Origin: Dicyema japonicum
Lineage: Eukaryota; Animalia; Dicyemida
Length of the DNA stretch: 64,000 nt
Assembly (NCBI GenBank): GCA_011109175.1
Contig: RDEW01000014.1
Span: forward strand, 744,001 to 808,000
Direction of reading: 5' to 3'
Position 1 is the first letter of the stretch, and each line of letters opens with the position of its first letter. The notes beneath the pieces are model-generated. The model was not told where the DNA came from and did no database searches. It saw only the letters and a program-made list of their open reading frames with translations. Made by a program: the position numbers and the translations under genes. Shown here piece by piece: positions 2,357 through 46,349 of the stretch.

Positions 2357-4605
2357 ATGCTAGCAATATTTTTATTTCATCTTACATCACAAAGTATTGT
2401 AATCGAAGTACCGAATATAAGCAACACTAGATCAAATGAATACTGGTGTTACCAAACAAAAGCTCGAGATTATTACAGCACAGATAAACTTTTCATAAGT
2501 AAGAAATTTAACCTAAAAAAGGTGGATTTGCAGGAATGGGAGGAAACTCCCCGCCACATCATGCAATTTTATTTTTATGCCGAAATCCAGTCAAAAATGA
2601 TCGTTTATGGCAAATCTATTATTATTTAATTTTCAAGGAAAGGGTGCGAAGAAATCTATAAGTTTTGTGGGGATAACATCGAGTTATTATTTTCTTGGGG
2701 TCCAAAAAGTTCACCTTTACATTTCCCTGAGAATATGGGATTTAAGTTGGCTAGAAATGATACTTTTATTCTTCAAATGCATTTCGGGCAATTAGAACAA
2801 GGAAAGAGTACAATTTGACTTATTTTAAAAGAGATCCTGAAGTGGTTCAGTTTGAAACTATTTTTGAAAAAAATCAAGTTAAAATATTTAATATTTAAAG
2901 AAAAAACTTTAAAAGAATTGGACTTTCTATTCTGGCGAACCAAAATTTTACAATTTCGCCCGCCAAAAAAAGTAATTATAATAAATCACGTTACGATGTT
3001 GAAATACGTACATCGTGTCGATATACGGGAAAAGATATCTTGTACCCAGTTTTATTTAGAGTCCACACTCATAGTCATGGTATTTATAATATTCTCTCAA
3101 ATAGGTCTTTTCGTATCAAGCTTCGTTTTCTCGAATAAAGCCACAAACGGTACTCTGATAGGCTCAAGTAGTCCTCAGTGGAATCAGGTGGGCTTAAATA
3201 CACTTTCTTAGAGTTTTTATCCAGCAAATAGAAATGCGGCAATCTTTCCTGGAGATATAATTGTACCTTAAATTTCGTTAATGTTAAGCTATCCACGTGT
3301 CACTTTAACTCAGAGGACGAAGACAGAGCAATTTTTGCTGGGTGGAATCATAACGATGAAATGTGCAACTTTTATTTGATCCATTATTCGAAATATAACC
3401 GAAGGAGTTCATTCACGTGTCTCAAAAATTTATATGATGAATACTTCAGTGAAATTAGAGAGGTTATACCTACGGAATATGAATCAAAAATTGGATTTAT
3501 CAACGGTTTACCAATATTGGGGACACAAAATAAAATTGGTTGAATAATAATGAATTTTAAGCATTTAAAATTGAAAGCATTACTACAAGAAATGAAATAT
3601 ACGAAAAATCCGGAGTTAGGCTGGGGGAAATATCCTCAATAAGCGGTAGATGATGCAAACGGGATTTACATTTTTCACCGAGGACCCAAAAAGTGGAAAA
3701 ATAAGTTTTTCGAGTGATAAGTCTTAAGAAATTCGTTTCAAAGTTTAATTAAAGAAAATGCCATTTTGGTTCTGAAAAATAAAAAGGTCCTCCAATTCGG
3801 GGGAAACTTGTATTTGATTAATTATTTAAGGTTCACTATGCCGCATGGAATATTTGTTGACGACAATATTTGGACAGTCGACGCTGCTAGCAATAAAGTT
3901 TTGAAATGATAATTTAGATTTTAAAATTATCATTAAACGAGTCTTCGAAGTCGTCAAATATCCAACTAACAATTAAACCTTTCTTTAATGGAAATTTTTG
4001 TGTTCACCGACCGATACCGTGGTTTCGCGGAAATTTGTTTTCATTTCATCAGGGTACCCAGTGAGTAAATTTCAGGTATTGTGATAACTATTTGCTCAAA
4101 TATGATAAAAGTGGAGAATTCGTCAAAAAAGTCAATTTATCTGAGGTAAAAGCTTCGAGTATTCTGTGTTAATTATATTCAGTACCACATAGCCTCACTG
4201 TTAACGATGAACGTGAAATTTTGTGCGTCGCTTTACGGGGGTTCGGGTTCTATCGCTGCTTTGACTTTGACTTAAACGAAATTGAAGAAGGCGGAACATT
4301 TGAAAATGACTTGATGGCAATTTCCTTCGATAATTCCATAAATGGTATTCCTGGTGTTTTATTTTTGCCCTATTTTTAACAAATGCCAGTTTACCTGCCG
4401 ACAGATCTGACATTTTTGTCCACTTTTTTGATTCCAATAGAACGTTAAAGCTAGATCTCGGTGATGTCGTACGCTTTGACTTTATTTCTAGAATCTGCCG
4501 GCTATTCATGATATTGCTGTTAAAGATTCCACAATATATGCAGCTACATTGAATCAAAAAAATCCTGTGGCAATTTACAAATTTGAAATAAATCAGTTAA
4601 CTTAA
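2357..4605 (+). CDS. PAM: Bifunctional peptidylglycine alpha-amidating monooxygenase (PHM+PAL), about 640 aa, 14 micro-introns
   Basis: Introns: 2499-2521, 2610-2637 (GC-AG), 2808-2831, 2878-2900, 3080-3104, 3188-3211, 3263-3288, 3539-3561, 3705-3728, 3810-3830, 3898-3917, 4054-4075, 4159-4182, 4469-4491. The spliced product has a short hydrophobic N-terminus (likely signal peptide). PHM motifs: HHAILFLC, LQMHFG, RVHTHSHG, DEMCNFY. PAL motifs: IYIFHRG, MPHGI, SGYC, IPHSL, AIHDI. Three 1-nt indels must be assumed (about 3640, 3996, 4365). Confidence 0.92.
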
Positions 4606-40047: not shown

Positions 40048-41064
40048 GCCAGAATAGTCCAACTCAACATAAATGGAATCAAGAACAAGATACTCGAACT
40101 TCGGGCATTAGTGAAAGAAAATCACATTGATCTGTTGCTATTTCAAGAGTCTAAACTTTCTCCAAAGAATTCAACAACAGTATTTCCGGGATTCACAGTA
40201 ATTAGCCGTGACAGAATTGGCAAACTTGGTGGAGGTCTTCTCACAGTTATCCGCAACGGCATTTCGTTTGAGGACTTAACTAACATTGCTTACACTATGC
40301 TTAAAGGATATGGAAATCTCGAACTTTTGGTTACCAAAGTACGATTCCCAAGACTATCAATAATAATTGTCAACGCATATCTCCCACCGTTGAGTTCCTG
40401 CCGTCCAGTGCTCCCAGACTCACTTTTCTCGCATTACTGAAGGATGTGTTATCTGTGGTGACTTCAATGCGAAGCACCCACTGTGGCTGACAGGACAAAC
40501 CTACGACAAAAGAGGGAAGATGATAATTGAGGACCTACACAGCCTATGTATACTCAACGATCCTGCACCCCATACAAGAGCACCTACTCGACGTAACGAT
40601 GAACCTTCTTCTATCGACATCTCATTGTCATCACCGTCCTTGGCTTCTCTTATTGACTGCTCAGTGAAGTATGACACCAGGAGTGACCACAATCCAATAT
40701 TTTTGGAGGTCAAAACGAGGTCACGGATAAAAGGACAATGTCCAACGATAACTAATTACAGCCTTGCGAATTAAAGAGGATTCAAGGATTACGTCGATAA
40801 TTGAATTGGACTATTAAATTTCCCCACTCCTGGATCCTATTTACTAGTCAGGATGTTCGCAGAGCCATATCCAAAGCCAACAACAGAGACTAAAGGACCA
40901 GACAACATAACCACATGTGAACTGAAGCACCTAGGCCATCGAGCCCTGGAACTATTAGCCTATATCTTCAACCTATCCATTAACACAAATACAATCCCTG
41001 AAATATGGAAGAAGTCTCTAATCAGACCTATCCGAAAACCCAACAAACCAATAGATGAACCATC

Positions 41065-42251
41065 GGAGTGCGGAAAAAAAGTCAAGTTGTCTTTTTTTAG
41101 TTTATATCGCATTTTTTGTGATACTACTAAGCATCTTTTAATTTTTAAAAATTTTTTCAATACTTGACTTTTTTTCCGCTTGACTTTTTTCCATTTTTGA
41201 AAATTTTTCCCTTATAAATTTTCGAAAATAGCGCAAAACGGAAAAAAAGTCAAGTCGTTAAACGAAATTTACGGACTTGACTTTTTTTCCGCTTTGGTAT
41301 AATCGCTTTTGACTAAATCAATTTTAAGAATTTCAAATTTTTTTTATTATCAAATGAATAAAAATTAAATTAAAGCATCTGAATGGCCATGCTATTTCCC
41401 CTAACAATAGCCAACGAGATACGTTCTCGGAACCAACTAGTCTCTTGCGGATCCTTGGTCACAGCTTGAATCATGGAGCCGATCTTACGAACCAACTCAT
41501 CTACTTGGGGCCAAGGATTCCTAATATAATAAAATTGACTTAACTTTTTTCGCTTTGGTTTAATCTTTTTGACTTAATCAATATACGGATTTTAATTCCT
41601 TTGGAAAAAGAATTTCAACAAGAACAAATAAAAAACGATTGATAGACAAAAAAAAATTTTTAAATATATGTCTGGATCGCCAGGACGGAAAAAAACAGTA
41701 GGAGAAGCCCTAAAAGCAATTGCATGGAATATTAAATATTCTTTTGACTCACATTAAATAATCCTTGATTCAGGTTAAATAAAAATCATATGTTATAACA
41801 TTTTAAAAAAATTTTAAAAGTAGAAAAAATTATTTTAGAATTTATTTTCCACCACGTGTTAGTTTTAGTTGTGGCGGGACATTTTAATTCATTAACATTA
41901 GCCAAAATTAACTATTTAAATAATTTGTTATTCTAAACTCGCTTACTTTTAAATGAAACGATTACTGAAAAAATCTTAATTTATAAACGGAAAAAAGTCA
42001 AGTCCGTAATTTCGTTAACGGACTTGACTTTTTTTCCGTTTTGCGCTAAATTTCGAAAATTATAAGGGAAAAATTTTCAAAAATGGAAAAAAAAGTCAGT
42101 ATTGAAAAAAATTTTAAAATTAAAAGATGCTAGTAGTATCACAAAAATGCTATATAAACTAAAAAAAGACAACTTGACTTTTTTTCCGCTTACGGACTTG
42201 ACTTTTTTTCCGCTTGACCTTTTTTTCCACTTGACTTTTTTTCCTACAACC
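41065..42251 (+). mobile_element. Non-autonomous deletion derivative of the Phantom/MULE element
   Basis: 8-bp TSD GAACCATC (41057-41064 and 42252-42259). Long TIRs and internal parts match 44050-44168 and 45529-45920. About 1.36 kb of transposase is deleted. Confidence 0.95.
41337..41520 (-). mobile_element. CRE-like 3' fragment inserted in the MULE derivative
   Basis: GILGPQVDELVRKIG..DPQETSWFRERISLAIVRGNS with an A-rich tail. Absent from the 43754 copy. Confidence 0.8.
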
Positions 42252-43753
42252 GAACCATCTTCCTATCGCCCAATATCTATTCTAAGTCTGGTCTCAAGGA
42301 TCCTTGAAAGGCTTGTTTTGGAAAAATACAAGACTCAATCTCAATACCTCCGACCCAGCACGGATTCCGGGATAACCATACGACCACAACACACCTTACA
42401 ATTCTCACACAATTCATTGCGGAAGGATTTAACTCCCCAAACCCATCAGAGGACAGTACTTAAATATCCGTGGATCACAAAAAGCGTTCGACTCAGTCCC
42501 TAGGAAACTCCTAACAAAGAAAATATACGAAACCAACATCCATTCGAACCTGAAACTTTGGCTTGGAAAACTTCCTAAATGGAAGACGAGCACAAGTACC
42601 TGCAACAACATCAAATCAAGATCTCGCTATTTCCCCAAATGGAGTTCCTCAAGGCTCTCCACTATCACCCCAACTCTTCATCTCTACATAAACGACATGC
42701 ACAAACCTGTAATGAAAACTGTCTAATCCTCTCCTATGCCGACAATATCATTCTTGCCTTCCAAGGAACAGAAGCATTCAATCAGCGACTCAGTTCGTCG
42801 AAAAATGCTTGAAAAGCTGGAACTATGGCTTCCGAAGACGGGGAGGCTCGACACATCAGCAACAAAGTCCTTGTCACGTTGTTTACCACTTACAAAAGAC
42901 AGCTCTGTGTCGAACAAAAAATCATTAAGAACGTGGTTATTCCTATTAACAAAACACCGAAGGATTCTGGGAGTCACCTTTGATAAGGGATTCTCCTTTA
43001 TCCGAAATGTTGAAAACAAAGTAACTTTTGCTCTGAAGAAAATGAGAATTTTAAAAGTGCTCTCAAAAACACATAGAGACCAAACTGGTGGCCTTACCAC
43101 GATTTATGAACAATTTATCCGACCAATGATGACGTATGCAAATCCTTCATGGGCAACGCACACTTCACGATCCTCCTCATTGAAACTATCCGCAATCGAG
43201 GAGACTGCAATAAGGTTAATTGGACCAAAGACACAGAATCCACCCATTGAAAATTTCTTAATTCGAATTACAACGGAAACTCTTAAAGGAGGCTATCCTC
43301 TATTCCATACACTATCGAAATATCTACAATCATACAGAAATTTTGAACCGATGCCATGTCCAATGAGAAGAGCTGTTCAGGATTCTCGACCCCGCCGGAC
43401 TCGTCCTCTCCTTTGTCGATCTGGGATCACTTAGTTAGATGAGAACTTCTTTGGTAATAATAATAGGACACTTTGGTTTGGATTTCACCAAAACTCTTCA
43501 GGCTAGCTACTGACTTCAACGTACGAAATTTATTATTGGAGGCTTTCGATTTAAAAGCCATCCACCTCGAGGTAGTCTTCCAAATCTTGCTTGAGATAGT
43601 AGGAAAACTTCCTACATCCACTCAACTTTGTCCTCCTTATTCTCCTGGTCGATAATCGCCTGGAGAGATATGATATTTGCCCAGCTCTCCTGTTGAGAAA
43701 TTGTATTAGGGAGTCTTGCATCAATTTCTTGCACTCTGAACAGCCCTCGGACC

Positions 43754-46209
43754 GGTTGTAGGAAAAAAAGTCAAGTGGAAAAAAAAGTCAAGCGGAAAAA
43801 AAGTCAAGTCCGTAAGCGGAAAAAAAGTCAAGCGGAAAAAAGTCAAGTTGTCTTTTTTTAGTTTATATCGCATTTTTGTGATACTACTAGCATCTTTTAA
43901 TTTTTAAAAATTTTTTCAATACTTGACTTTTTTTCCGCTTGACTTTTTTTCTATTTTTGAAAATTTTTCCCTTATAAATTTTCGAAATTTAGCGCAAAAT
44001 GGAAAAAAAGTCAAGTCCGCTAACGAAATCACGGACTTGACTTTTTTTCCGCTTTGGTATAATCGCTTTGACTAAATCAATTTAAGAATTTCAAGGTAAT
44101 AATAAAATTGACTTAACTTTTTTCGCTTTGGTTTAATCTTTTTGACTTAATCAATATACGGATTTTAAGGTTATAATTAGGCGTATTTTAAATATTATGC
44201 TTTCCGCAAAAAATAAGAGACAAAATGGAGATAATATCAACTAACAAAGGAGGAAAGAAAATTTGTTTCAAAGGTTATATGTATACAAAGCACTCGACAA
44301 CAAAAAATTATATAATTTTTAATTGTGTAAAAAATCTTGACAATGATGCAGAGGAAGCTTAAGAACAGATCATAACTTTAAGTTTCCTAAAGAAGGAATC
44401 TCTCACAATCACGAATTTGACGAAACTCAAATAAAACTGATGAAGTTGTGCAACAAAGTAAAACTTATTGCAAAAAAGAGCCAAGAGAATTTTTTACAAA
44501 TCTATTCAAATGTTGTTTCTCAATGTGATACAGCATCCAGAATTATTCTCCCTTCTGCAGATTCTTTCAAGCGAACAATAAGGAATCAACGCTTGTCTCT
44601 ACCTATTCCAAAAAATATTTTCGATCTCGGAGATATTCCATCGTCTTTATCTTTAACTCTTGGTCCAGATTCAGAAAATTTTTTAATTTATGATAATCAT
44701 AGAAGAACCGATAGAATATTGATATTCAGCACCAAAACTAATATAACGTTATTGGCGAATTCAAAATCATGGTATATGGATGGAAATTTCTCCATGGCAC
44801 CATGTATCTTCAAGCAAATCTATTTTATCAGGATTCAGTTCAATGCCAGTGCAATTACAGTTATTTATGGAATATTACCTTCTAAATCACGAAAGATTTA
44901 CGAAGAATTTTTTGAGGCTATTCAAAATGCAATTCATAATTTGAATTTGGAATTTTGTCTTGAAACTATTATGGCAGACTTTGAAGATTCGGTATTTCGA
45001 GCTGTCCTTGCAGTATTTGGGAGACGAATACATATTAGAGGATGTTATTATCATCTAAGACAGTCAACCTGGAGAAAAATTCAAGAATTGCATCTAGTAA
45101 AACAATATAAAGAAAATATTAATTTTAACATTTTTTGCGCAATGATAGACGCTCTTGCGTTTTTACCCATTCAAGATATGGAAGAAGGAATAGAATTCCT
45201 AATGAATAATATGCCAGAAAATGTTCCAGATTCAAAATATATATTAGATTATTTTGATAGAACATATGTTCGCGGTTATTATCGTTGCTTAAATGATCGA
45301 GAAAACCCCTTAGCTGTTAGAATACAGCACATTGCTCCATTGTTTCCTCCAAATTTATGGAATGTGTATGAAGCTACACTCAATAATAAACAAAGAACAA
45401 ATAACTATTGTGAAGGGTGGAACAATAAATTATACAATTTGACGGGATATCGTCATCCATCGATATGGAATATTATATCGTCATTCCAAAAAGAAGAAAA
45501 AATGACGAAAACTATTATTGACCAGGATTCCTTTGGAAAAAGAATTTCAACAAGAACAAATAAAAAAACGATTGATAGACAAAAAAGGCTTTTAAATATA
45601 TGTCTGGATCGCCAGGACGGAAAAAAACAGTAGGAGAAGCCCTAAAAGCAATTGCATGGAATATTAAATATTCTTTTGATTCACATTAAATAATCCCTTG
45701 ATTCTCGTTAAATAAAAATCATATGTTTATAACATTTTAAAAAATTTTAAAAGTAGAAAAAATCTGTTTTATTTTTAGAATTTATTTCCACCACGTGTAG
45801 TTTTAGTTGTGGCGGGACATTTTAATTCATTAACATTAGCCAAAATTAACTATTTAAATAATTTGTTATAAACTCGCTTACTTTAAAATGAAACGATCAT
45901 GAATAAAAATCTTAATTTATAAACGGAAAAAAAGTCAAGTCCGTAATTTCGTTAACGGACTTGACTTTTTTTCCGTTTTGCGCTAAATTTCGAAAATTTA
46001 TAAGGGAAAAATTTTCAAAAATGGAAAAAAAGTCAAGCGGAAAAAAAGTCAAGTATTGAAAAAATTTTTAAAAATTAAAAGATGCTAGTAGTATCACAAA
46101 AATGCGATATAAACTAAAAAAAGACAACTTGACTTGACTTTTTTCCGCTTACGGACTTGACTTTTTTTCCGCTTGACTTTTTTTCCACTTGACTTTTTTT
46201 CCGCACTCC
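43754..46209 (+). mobile_element. Near-intact Phantom/Mutator DNA transposon with about 300-bp complex TIRs
   Basis: 8-bp TSD CTCGGACC (43746-43753 and 46210-46217). TIRs are built from GGAAAAAAAGTCAAG units, with a 19-bp perfect hairpin at 44001-44050. Confidence 0.97.
44225..45689 (+). CDS. MULE transposase with FLYWCH-like N-terminus
   Basis: KGGKKICFKGYMYT..C..CRG..HNH, WYMDGNF, IMADFE, GCYYHLRQ, RTNNYCEGWNN (DDE triad and CxxH present). Main ORF is 44440-45633; 1-nt shifts near 44345 and 45625 extend it. Confidence 0.92.
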
Positions 46210-46349
46210 CTCGGACCACGTCGCCTGCGTTCTCATTGGTTTGCCCACCGGTTCATTCACAGAAAGGTCCGTAGGTAATGTCCCACTCTGATTAGTAGAA
46301 ACAAACGTGTTCATCACCACAAGATATTAATTTTTTATGTTATATATAA

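Follow-up and report, generated by a model that had tools for sequence, protein, structure and literature searches.

Among described transposons, the closest parallel to the element considered here is Tm1 of the root-knot nematodes (Meloidogyne), which has a Phantom-like FLYWCH transposase and Foldback-like arms made of 13–15-bp tandem repeats in variable number (Gross & Williamson, 2011; PMC3169594). Asymmetric 7-bp motifs, A1 and A2, stand outside the inverted repeat and are followed by GGA; target-site duplications (TSDs) measure 8–10 bp; and elements mostly carry A1 together with A2, the sole A2/A2 element having no TSD and being ascribed to a crossover between two elements (PMC3169594). 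Elements are oriented there by A1 and A2, and the passages searched hold nothing on the direction of the core (PMC3169594). Here we describe a family of Mutator-type transposons in the dicyemid Dicyema japonicum, two copies of which, copy 1 and copy 2, are neighbours in a 64-kb stretch of its genome assembly (the whole stretch of DNA that was analysed, henceforth the window), and whose internal core is found in either direction relative to two unlike terminal motifs.

Inversion isomers that arise through inverted repeats are familiar from the flip-flop of plastid genomes, the yeast 2-micron plasmid and the isomers of herpesvirus genomes. These classical isomers are whole replicons or depend on a dedicated recombinase (FLP). 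The D. japonicum family resembles them in that a unique segment between long inverted repeats occurs in both directions with respect to outside markers, but it is a 1–2.5-kb cut-and-paste transposon without a recombinase beyond its transposase, and its two forms are fixed at different loci. Galileo of Drosophila has long, internally repetitive arms that vary in length, as well as chimeric copies without matching TSDs, and both conversion and ectopic exchange have been invoked between its arms and between its copies (PMC3573991). The present family shares this arm dynamism and the chimeric copies, whereas the transposase of Galileo is of the P type (PMC3573991). For casposons, inversion via recombination between the terminal inverted repeats has been considered (PMC4779613). 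Core-flip isomers of a Mutator-type element were not found described in a limited search of the open-access literature. An earlier sequence-only reading of the window was not aware of such an arrangement being described for Mutator-like elements (MULEs), which stands in part: asymmetric 7-nt tips were already known from Tm1, and it is the flip of the core for which no description was found, the mechanism itself, recombination between inverted repeats, being ordinary.

Two neighbouring copies with opposite tip arrangements

Family members have arms of about 290–300 bp, are flanked by 8-bp TSDs, and differ at their two ends in the outermost 7 nt, which read GGAGTGC (tip A) at one end and GGTTGTA (tip B) at the other. 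Copy 1 (41065–42251, plus strand) is a 1187-bp non-autonomous deletion derivative of the commoner or major form, with tip A upstream of the core and tip B downstream: GGAGTGC stands at its left end (41065–41071, plus strand; read directly and recovered by the genome pattern search) and the reverse complement of GGTTGTA at its right end (42245–42251). Copy 2 (43754–46209, plus strand), a transposase-bearing element of 2456 bp, is of the minor form, with tip B at its upstream left end (43754–43760) and tip A at its downstream right end (46203–46209). By direct reading, copy 1 lies between two units of the TSD GAACCATC (41057–41064 and 42252–42259), and copy 2 between two units of its own, CTCGGACC (43746–43753 and 46210–46217). 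Directly inside tips of both types comes GGAAAAAAAGTCAAG, a 15-mer of which the two copies contain 23 occurrences, where 0.02 would be expected in the window. Tips and TSDs were thus as the sequence-only reading had described them.

That reading had further held that both internal regions run in the same direction, and the repeat listing of the window bears it out: the inner segments of copy 1 recur as direct repeats in copy 2, and copy 1 aligns to copy-2 positions 79–341, 346–415 and 1774–2449, every block in plus orientation. An inversion spanning the two copies, which the reading had excluded, is rejected on the same ground, since each copy retains its own intact TSD. Copies 1 and 2 are opposite isomers relative to their tips.

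The boundaries of copy 1 can be checked against uninterrupted sites. Its reconstructed empty site (left flank, one TSD unit and right flank) has 92 matches, 38 of them exact, in paralogous copies of a long interspersed nuclear element (LINE), which establishes that the 7-nt tips are part of the insertion and that the boundaries are exact. The idea that the tips are captured flank or the remains of an older duplication was rejected, as A and the top-strand B are not direct repeats and each is constant at more than 50 loci. One further element (L048, C112:604454) has its B tip inserted at the same LINE nucleotide as copy 1, in a paralogous LINE; its flank reads GGAAAATGGTTC, as compared with GGAAGATGGTTC at 42252–42275 of the window, and either the target site was reused or an already interrupted LINE was duplicated.

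Tips and core direction across the genome

The tabulation of end types that the sequence-only reading had proposed was carried out on the whole assembly (67,542,437 bases in 377 pieces), using 22-nt patterns for the A and B ends with at most one mismatch and the reversed patterns as controls. The A pattern matched 71 times and the B pattern 57 times, the controls not at all. When inward-facing ends within a few kilobases were paired into elements, about 35 were A/B and three A/A, and no B/B element was found among such pairs genome-wide; like-ended copies are accordingly not common. Fifteen of 20 sequenced A/B elements have a perfect TSD of 8 bp (or 9 bp), three a near-perfect one and two none, and not one of the three A/A elements has any. 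The A/A elements were considered as proof that ends assort freely and rejected in that role, as none has a TSD and two of the three sit in rearranged or palindromic contexts.

In one of these (L077, C301:586128–587487), the 12-nt outer flanks are reverse-complementary to each other at 11 of 12 positions, and the right arm is an inverted copy of the element's own upstream arm, a rearrangement of the fold-back type. At another locus (L066, C61:14417–18690), a flank of about 290 bp occurs twice (positions 212–538 and 3737–4063; 94% alike), meeting a B tip on one side and, inverted, an A tip at the same nucleotide; the piece with the A tip, 255 bp long, is an A/A element that has no TSD, and runs of N lie nearby. 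Two paralogues or haplotypes that differ in their tips may be involved, or else a rearrangement or assembly join.

To assign core direction, the 1.5 kb lying inward of each end was compared with copy 2, and the strands of genome-wide core matches were combined with end coordinates; about 65 further end regions entered the census through match coordinates and strands alone. Among ends whose side could be determined, tip A lies upstream of the transposase in 19 and downstream in nine, and tip B lies downstream in 20 and upstream in four. A total of 43 elements could be oriented, 34 of them major (A upstream, like copy 1) and nine minor (A downstream, like copy 2), a departure from an even split (p = 0.0002). 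For four minor elements (copy 2, C24:964338, C46:1063255 and C235:571350) the complete sequence includes TSDs. Both isomers, each with one A and one B tip, thus occur at many loci genome-wide, as the pair in the window had led the sequence-only reading to expect; with respect to markers that lie outside the repeats the core runs either way, and the observation is real and general in this assembly.

The layout of the window is itself repeated 275 kb away on the same scaffold by another two neighbours (L065, C46:1060902–1062446 and 1063255–1067570), where a major deletion derivative (A...B), 0.8 kb of intervening DNA and a minor element (B...A) follow one another with cores in the same direction. 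The TSDs differ from those in the window, and the second element contains about 3 kb of extra DNA.

Probable exchange within the arms and its rivals

From the outside inwards, the tip of an arm is followed by GGA and an array of 16-bp units, after which the inverted repeat continues for about 200 nt and includes a hairpin. The units recur at a spacing of 16–17 bp, and their number, from one to about five per arm, varies among arms and copies. In copy 2 the arms measure about 301 nt (43754–44054, plus strand) and 289 nt (45921–46209, minus strand); the inner part of about 200 nt is 98% matched between arms, and one listed inverted repeat that includes the downstream arm of copy 2 spans 215 nt at 98%. 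Copy 1 has a short upstream arm from which the outer 16-bp repeats are gone (41065–41290, plus strand), and a downstream arm (41981–42251, minus strand) established by direct reading and the inverted-repeat listing. The hairpin, with stems of 19–20 bp and a loop of 10–12 nt, lies at 44001–44050 and again at 45925–45974, 41240–41290 and about 41983–42037.

Six small markers separate the two arms of typical major elements. Upstream arms carry AAGGGG, TCGTC, CTA, AAAATGG and a C-type hairpin loop, and downstream arms GTGG in the second unit, AAGCGG, TTGTC, CCA, AAAACGG and a T-type loop; the loop was scored only in arms with full context, as in some short elements (e.g., C224) the pattern reached the opposite arm. 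All four B-tipped upstream arms, which belong to minor elements, combine outer markers of the downstream type (TTGTC, GCGG) with inner markers of the upstream type (AAAATGG, the C-type loop where readable and, in copy 2, CTA as well). In the upstream arm of copy 2, TTGTC stands at 43848–43852, CTA at 43951–43953 and the T of AAAATGG at 44000, followed by the upstream-type inner loop CTAACGAAATCA at 44020–44031, so that the switch point falls between TTGTC and CTA. That the outer arm keeps with the tip and the inner arm with the core is what a crossover inside the arm predicts, and the chimeric B-tipped arm of copy 2 is, as far as these markers can tell, the footprint of a crossover within the arms. 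The core inversion between long terminal repeats with retained tips that the sequence-only reading had proposed is strengthened in this way, the exchange point being placed inside the arm.

A-tipped downstream arms, that of copy 2 included, are of the downstream type over their whole length, which means that a reciprocal crossover fits only if the outer upstream arm of the parent had already been converted. Such arms exist. The closest major-form relative of copy 2 (C2:255241) has tip A joined to the outer haplotype that the A arm of copy 2 also carries, and in copy 1 and in C90:860765 the upstream arm is of the downstream type throughout (in copy 1, TTGTC, CCA, AAAACGG and the T-type loop) and retains tip A. 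Conversion without crossover therefore also occurs and spares the tip, which stands at the edge of the homology.

The hairpin loop offers an observation of its own. Its orientation varies among genomic copies, TTAACGAAATTA in some and the reverse complement TAATTTCGTTAA in others, as at C2:257480 (L031), C24:472114 (L034) and C90:674404 (L047). A loop found both ways round suggests the core flip in miniature, by template switching or exchange within the stems.

We regard it as probable that arm recombination, flipping the core between fixed unlike tips in one young Tm1-like family, is the best explanation of these patterns. The two near-identical inverted arms of about 290–300 bp would recombine with each other, by homologous recombination or by template switching. 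Non-crossover exchange would make the arms alike, and a crossover, or a template switch to the same effect in the course of repair synthesis, would invert everything inside the exchange point. Lying outside the homology, the tips would stay in place, so that each product would retain one A and one B. Copy 1 has the more frequent arrangement, tip A lying upstream of the transposase, and copy 2 would be the flipped one; flipped elements would remain mobile, and both forms would spread.

Further markers bear on how often this happened. An identical 44-nt junction (41574–41617, plus strand, in copy 1), at which copy-2 positions 415 and 1774 are joined, occurs in major elements (copy 1 and C24:472114), in minor elements (C46:1063255, C235:571350 and C146:369671) and also in a single A/A element. 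Another structural marker is a segment of about 190 bp (41337–41525, plus strand, in copy 1; missing from copy 2): many copies of both forms have it, and both its present and its absent states are found among major and among minor elements. Full-length major and minor copies are 99.2–99.6% alike over the downstream 1.2 kb, one pair having no substitution differences there. The common junction, the 190-bp marker and this near-identity argue for more than one flip; and since three flipped copies share one deletion but have different TSDs at their three loci, flipped elements probably went on transposing. The 190-bp segment, which is more G+C-rich than its surroundings, separates the upstream arm from the core; capture of a fragment or a nested insertion could account for it.

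Several observations weigh against arm recombination with repeated flips. Every orientation rests on a hybrid assembly (67.5 Mb, 377 scaffolds) made by merging Illumina contigs from Platanus with PacBio contigs from Falcon, followed by scaffolding, short-read gap closing and haplotype merging (PMC6736024; that paper makes no mention of Mutator-type elements), and the flipped elements are those with the most similar arms (the TTGTC-type outer part) and hence the easiest to mis-orient. The reciprocal A arm, with outer upstream-type and inner downstream-type markers, would be expected and was not seen. In copy 2, 550 bp of the upstream core (44169–44713; copy-2 positions 416–960) are only 87–93% identical to the other copies compared, so that the family has a mosaic core, implying that copies which had diverged exchanged sequence, and such exchange could explain the common markers without repeated flips. 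Trees built from 400 and 1230 columns of the downstream core are star-like, with at most one starred branch; they do not allow events to be counted and serve only to show that the two forms are nearly identical. One rival explanation is as follows: a single old flip would have given two sub-lineages that were amplified separately, the junction and the 190-bp marker being shuffled between them later by exchange during gap repair. The strong differences in divergence among core segments, the similar chimeric make-up of all four B-tipped upstream arms and the weak clustering of form on the tree (29–36 of 500 shuffles as low) would suit it. We nevertheless consider a single flip unlikely, in view of major and minor copies that no substitution distinguishes over 1.2 kb and of an arm marker that is CTA in copy 2 and CCA in the three other flipped elements; going by this marker, the exchange in copy 2 may lie elsewhere (between TTGTC and CTA) than in the others (between CCA and AAAATGG). 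On the preferred reading, the flip would have occurred more than once.

A different concern is that hybrid assembly, merging or gap closing mis-oriented the core between near-identical 300-bp arms at some loci. Runs of N and single Ns do occur in the scaffolds, and the palindromic junctions at C61 and C301 are odd. However, no N is present in the window or at those minor-form loci whose sequence was checked; the elements are 1–4 kb long and lie within contigs of a genome that is 49% repeat, which points to spanning long reads; one deletion junction is found in three flipped elements at three loci; and by coordinates the closest relative of copy 2 (C356:1308059; 98% over the whole core) has the same form. 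Random mis-orientation of one population would also not predict that A arms differ by side, as they do 20–90 nt from the tip, where TTGTC and TCGTC stand in a ratio of 8:1 in arms attached downstream and 2:12 in arms attached upstream (Fisher p = 0.0007). We thus judge an assembly artefact quite improbable. Homopolymer indels were tried as a sign of long-read origin and rejected, the core showing 39–94 substitutions as against 6–10 indel events, few of them in homopolymers. The sequence-only reading had also entertained a requirement for heterologous ends. In a strong version, the transposase would need an end of each type, and inversion of the core would be regular, perhaps coupled to transposition. 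No A/A or B/B element has a TSD, nematode Tm1 retains the design of an asymmetric 7-nt tip with GGA, and GT flanks A ends more often than B ends, in both forms, a hint that the two ends may play unequal parts in target capture. That the tips are passively retained nevertheless suffices for the rule of one A and one B, because tips that lie outside the homology are never moved by arm recombination; A/A elements form rarely, so that their absence among transposed copies is weak evidence, and, having no TSDs, they are uninformative on the mobility of like ends; and nothing ties inversion to the transposase. The requirement is left unsupported, and we hold it to be very unlikely.

A Tm1-like Phantom family and the use of unlike tips

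Copy 2 has two open reading frames on the plus strand that identify its type. The first (44225–44362), which ends in a stop, encodes a FLYWCH zinc finger in its N-terminal half only (PF04500, 29.4 bits, the cutoff being 23.6); the second (44440–45633; 397 aa) contains a MULE transposase domain (PF10551, E = 8.7e-6) whose match spans profile positions 2–98 of 99 at 26.5 bits, slightly below the cutoff of 27.6. In the protein atlas, the closest clusters are MULE families from animals, some of which include FLYWCH (0.95–0.97; four clusters listed, representing 30 hits). The gene is broken between 44225 and 44440, the FLYWCH frame stopping at 44362 and the finger resuming in another frame, and in none of the four full-length copies read is the whole protein in one frame, the three others requiring at least two frames or having no in-frame FLYWCH part. 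With a MULE (DDE) transposase domain, an N-terminal FLYWCH finger and a TSD in the range of about 8–10 bp, the family is, on its predicted domains, a Phantom-type Mutator transposon, the type to which the sequence-only reading had assigned it.

The family joins the Tm1-like Phantom/Foldback group of Mutator elements as a new and young member, likened to Tm1 by description. Tm1 matches it in the composite arms of short tandem repeats, in two different 7-bp tips with GGA, in the TSDs and in the Phantom-like FLYWCH transposase, and the A2/A2 element of Tm1 parallels the three A/A elements of D. japonicum, which likewise have no TSDs. Tip and repeat sequences differ, and the TSD is 8 bp here and mostly 9 bp in Tm1; GGTT is common to tip B and to the Tm1 motif A1 (CGGTTAA), a resemblance only. 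Whereas Tm1 was judged senescent, the D. japonicum family is young, its full-length copies being in part more than 99% alike. The design of asymmetric tips, GGA and repeat arrays is hereby extended from nematodes to a dicyemid, and this argues that a Phantom sub-lineage has conserved the odd tips, which would then be no accident of a single genome.

In transposons with identical ends, an inversion of the core is indistinguishable from an insertion in the opposite direction; identical tips hide flips, and the rate of arm recombination in Mutator and Foldback elements is therefore normally invisible. The unlike 7-nt tips of this family act as fixed outside markers, against which arms exchange with and without crossover while the tips are never carried along. 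As elements of either core direction have spread, all needs in cis must lie in the tips and arms.

The target sites provide a lead as to what else the tips might do. GT stands just outside the 8-bp TSD at 16 of 55 exact A ends and at 5 of 51 exact B ends, where base composition would give an estimated 3 or so; it is often GGT followed by a purine, as at 46218–46221 beside the A tip of copy 2, and it goes with tip A whichever way the core points (six of nine minor A ends). The asymmetry was noticed post hoc, with a p of about 0.015 that is a rough estimate rather than a computed value, and as a lead and not a result it may reflect a polar target preference. One could go further and suppose, as a tentative and rather doubtful proposal, that the tips are functionally different ends, one guiding strand transfer beside GT or GGT and one of each being needed, with the core flipping freely and repeatedly on the time scale of transposition, perhaps in the repair of the gap left by excision. 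If that were true, recombination between inverted repeats inside a eukaryotic transposon would have a natural reporter in this family, which would also be a MULE whose ends are genuinely differentiated.

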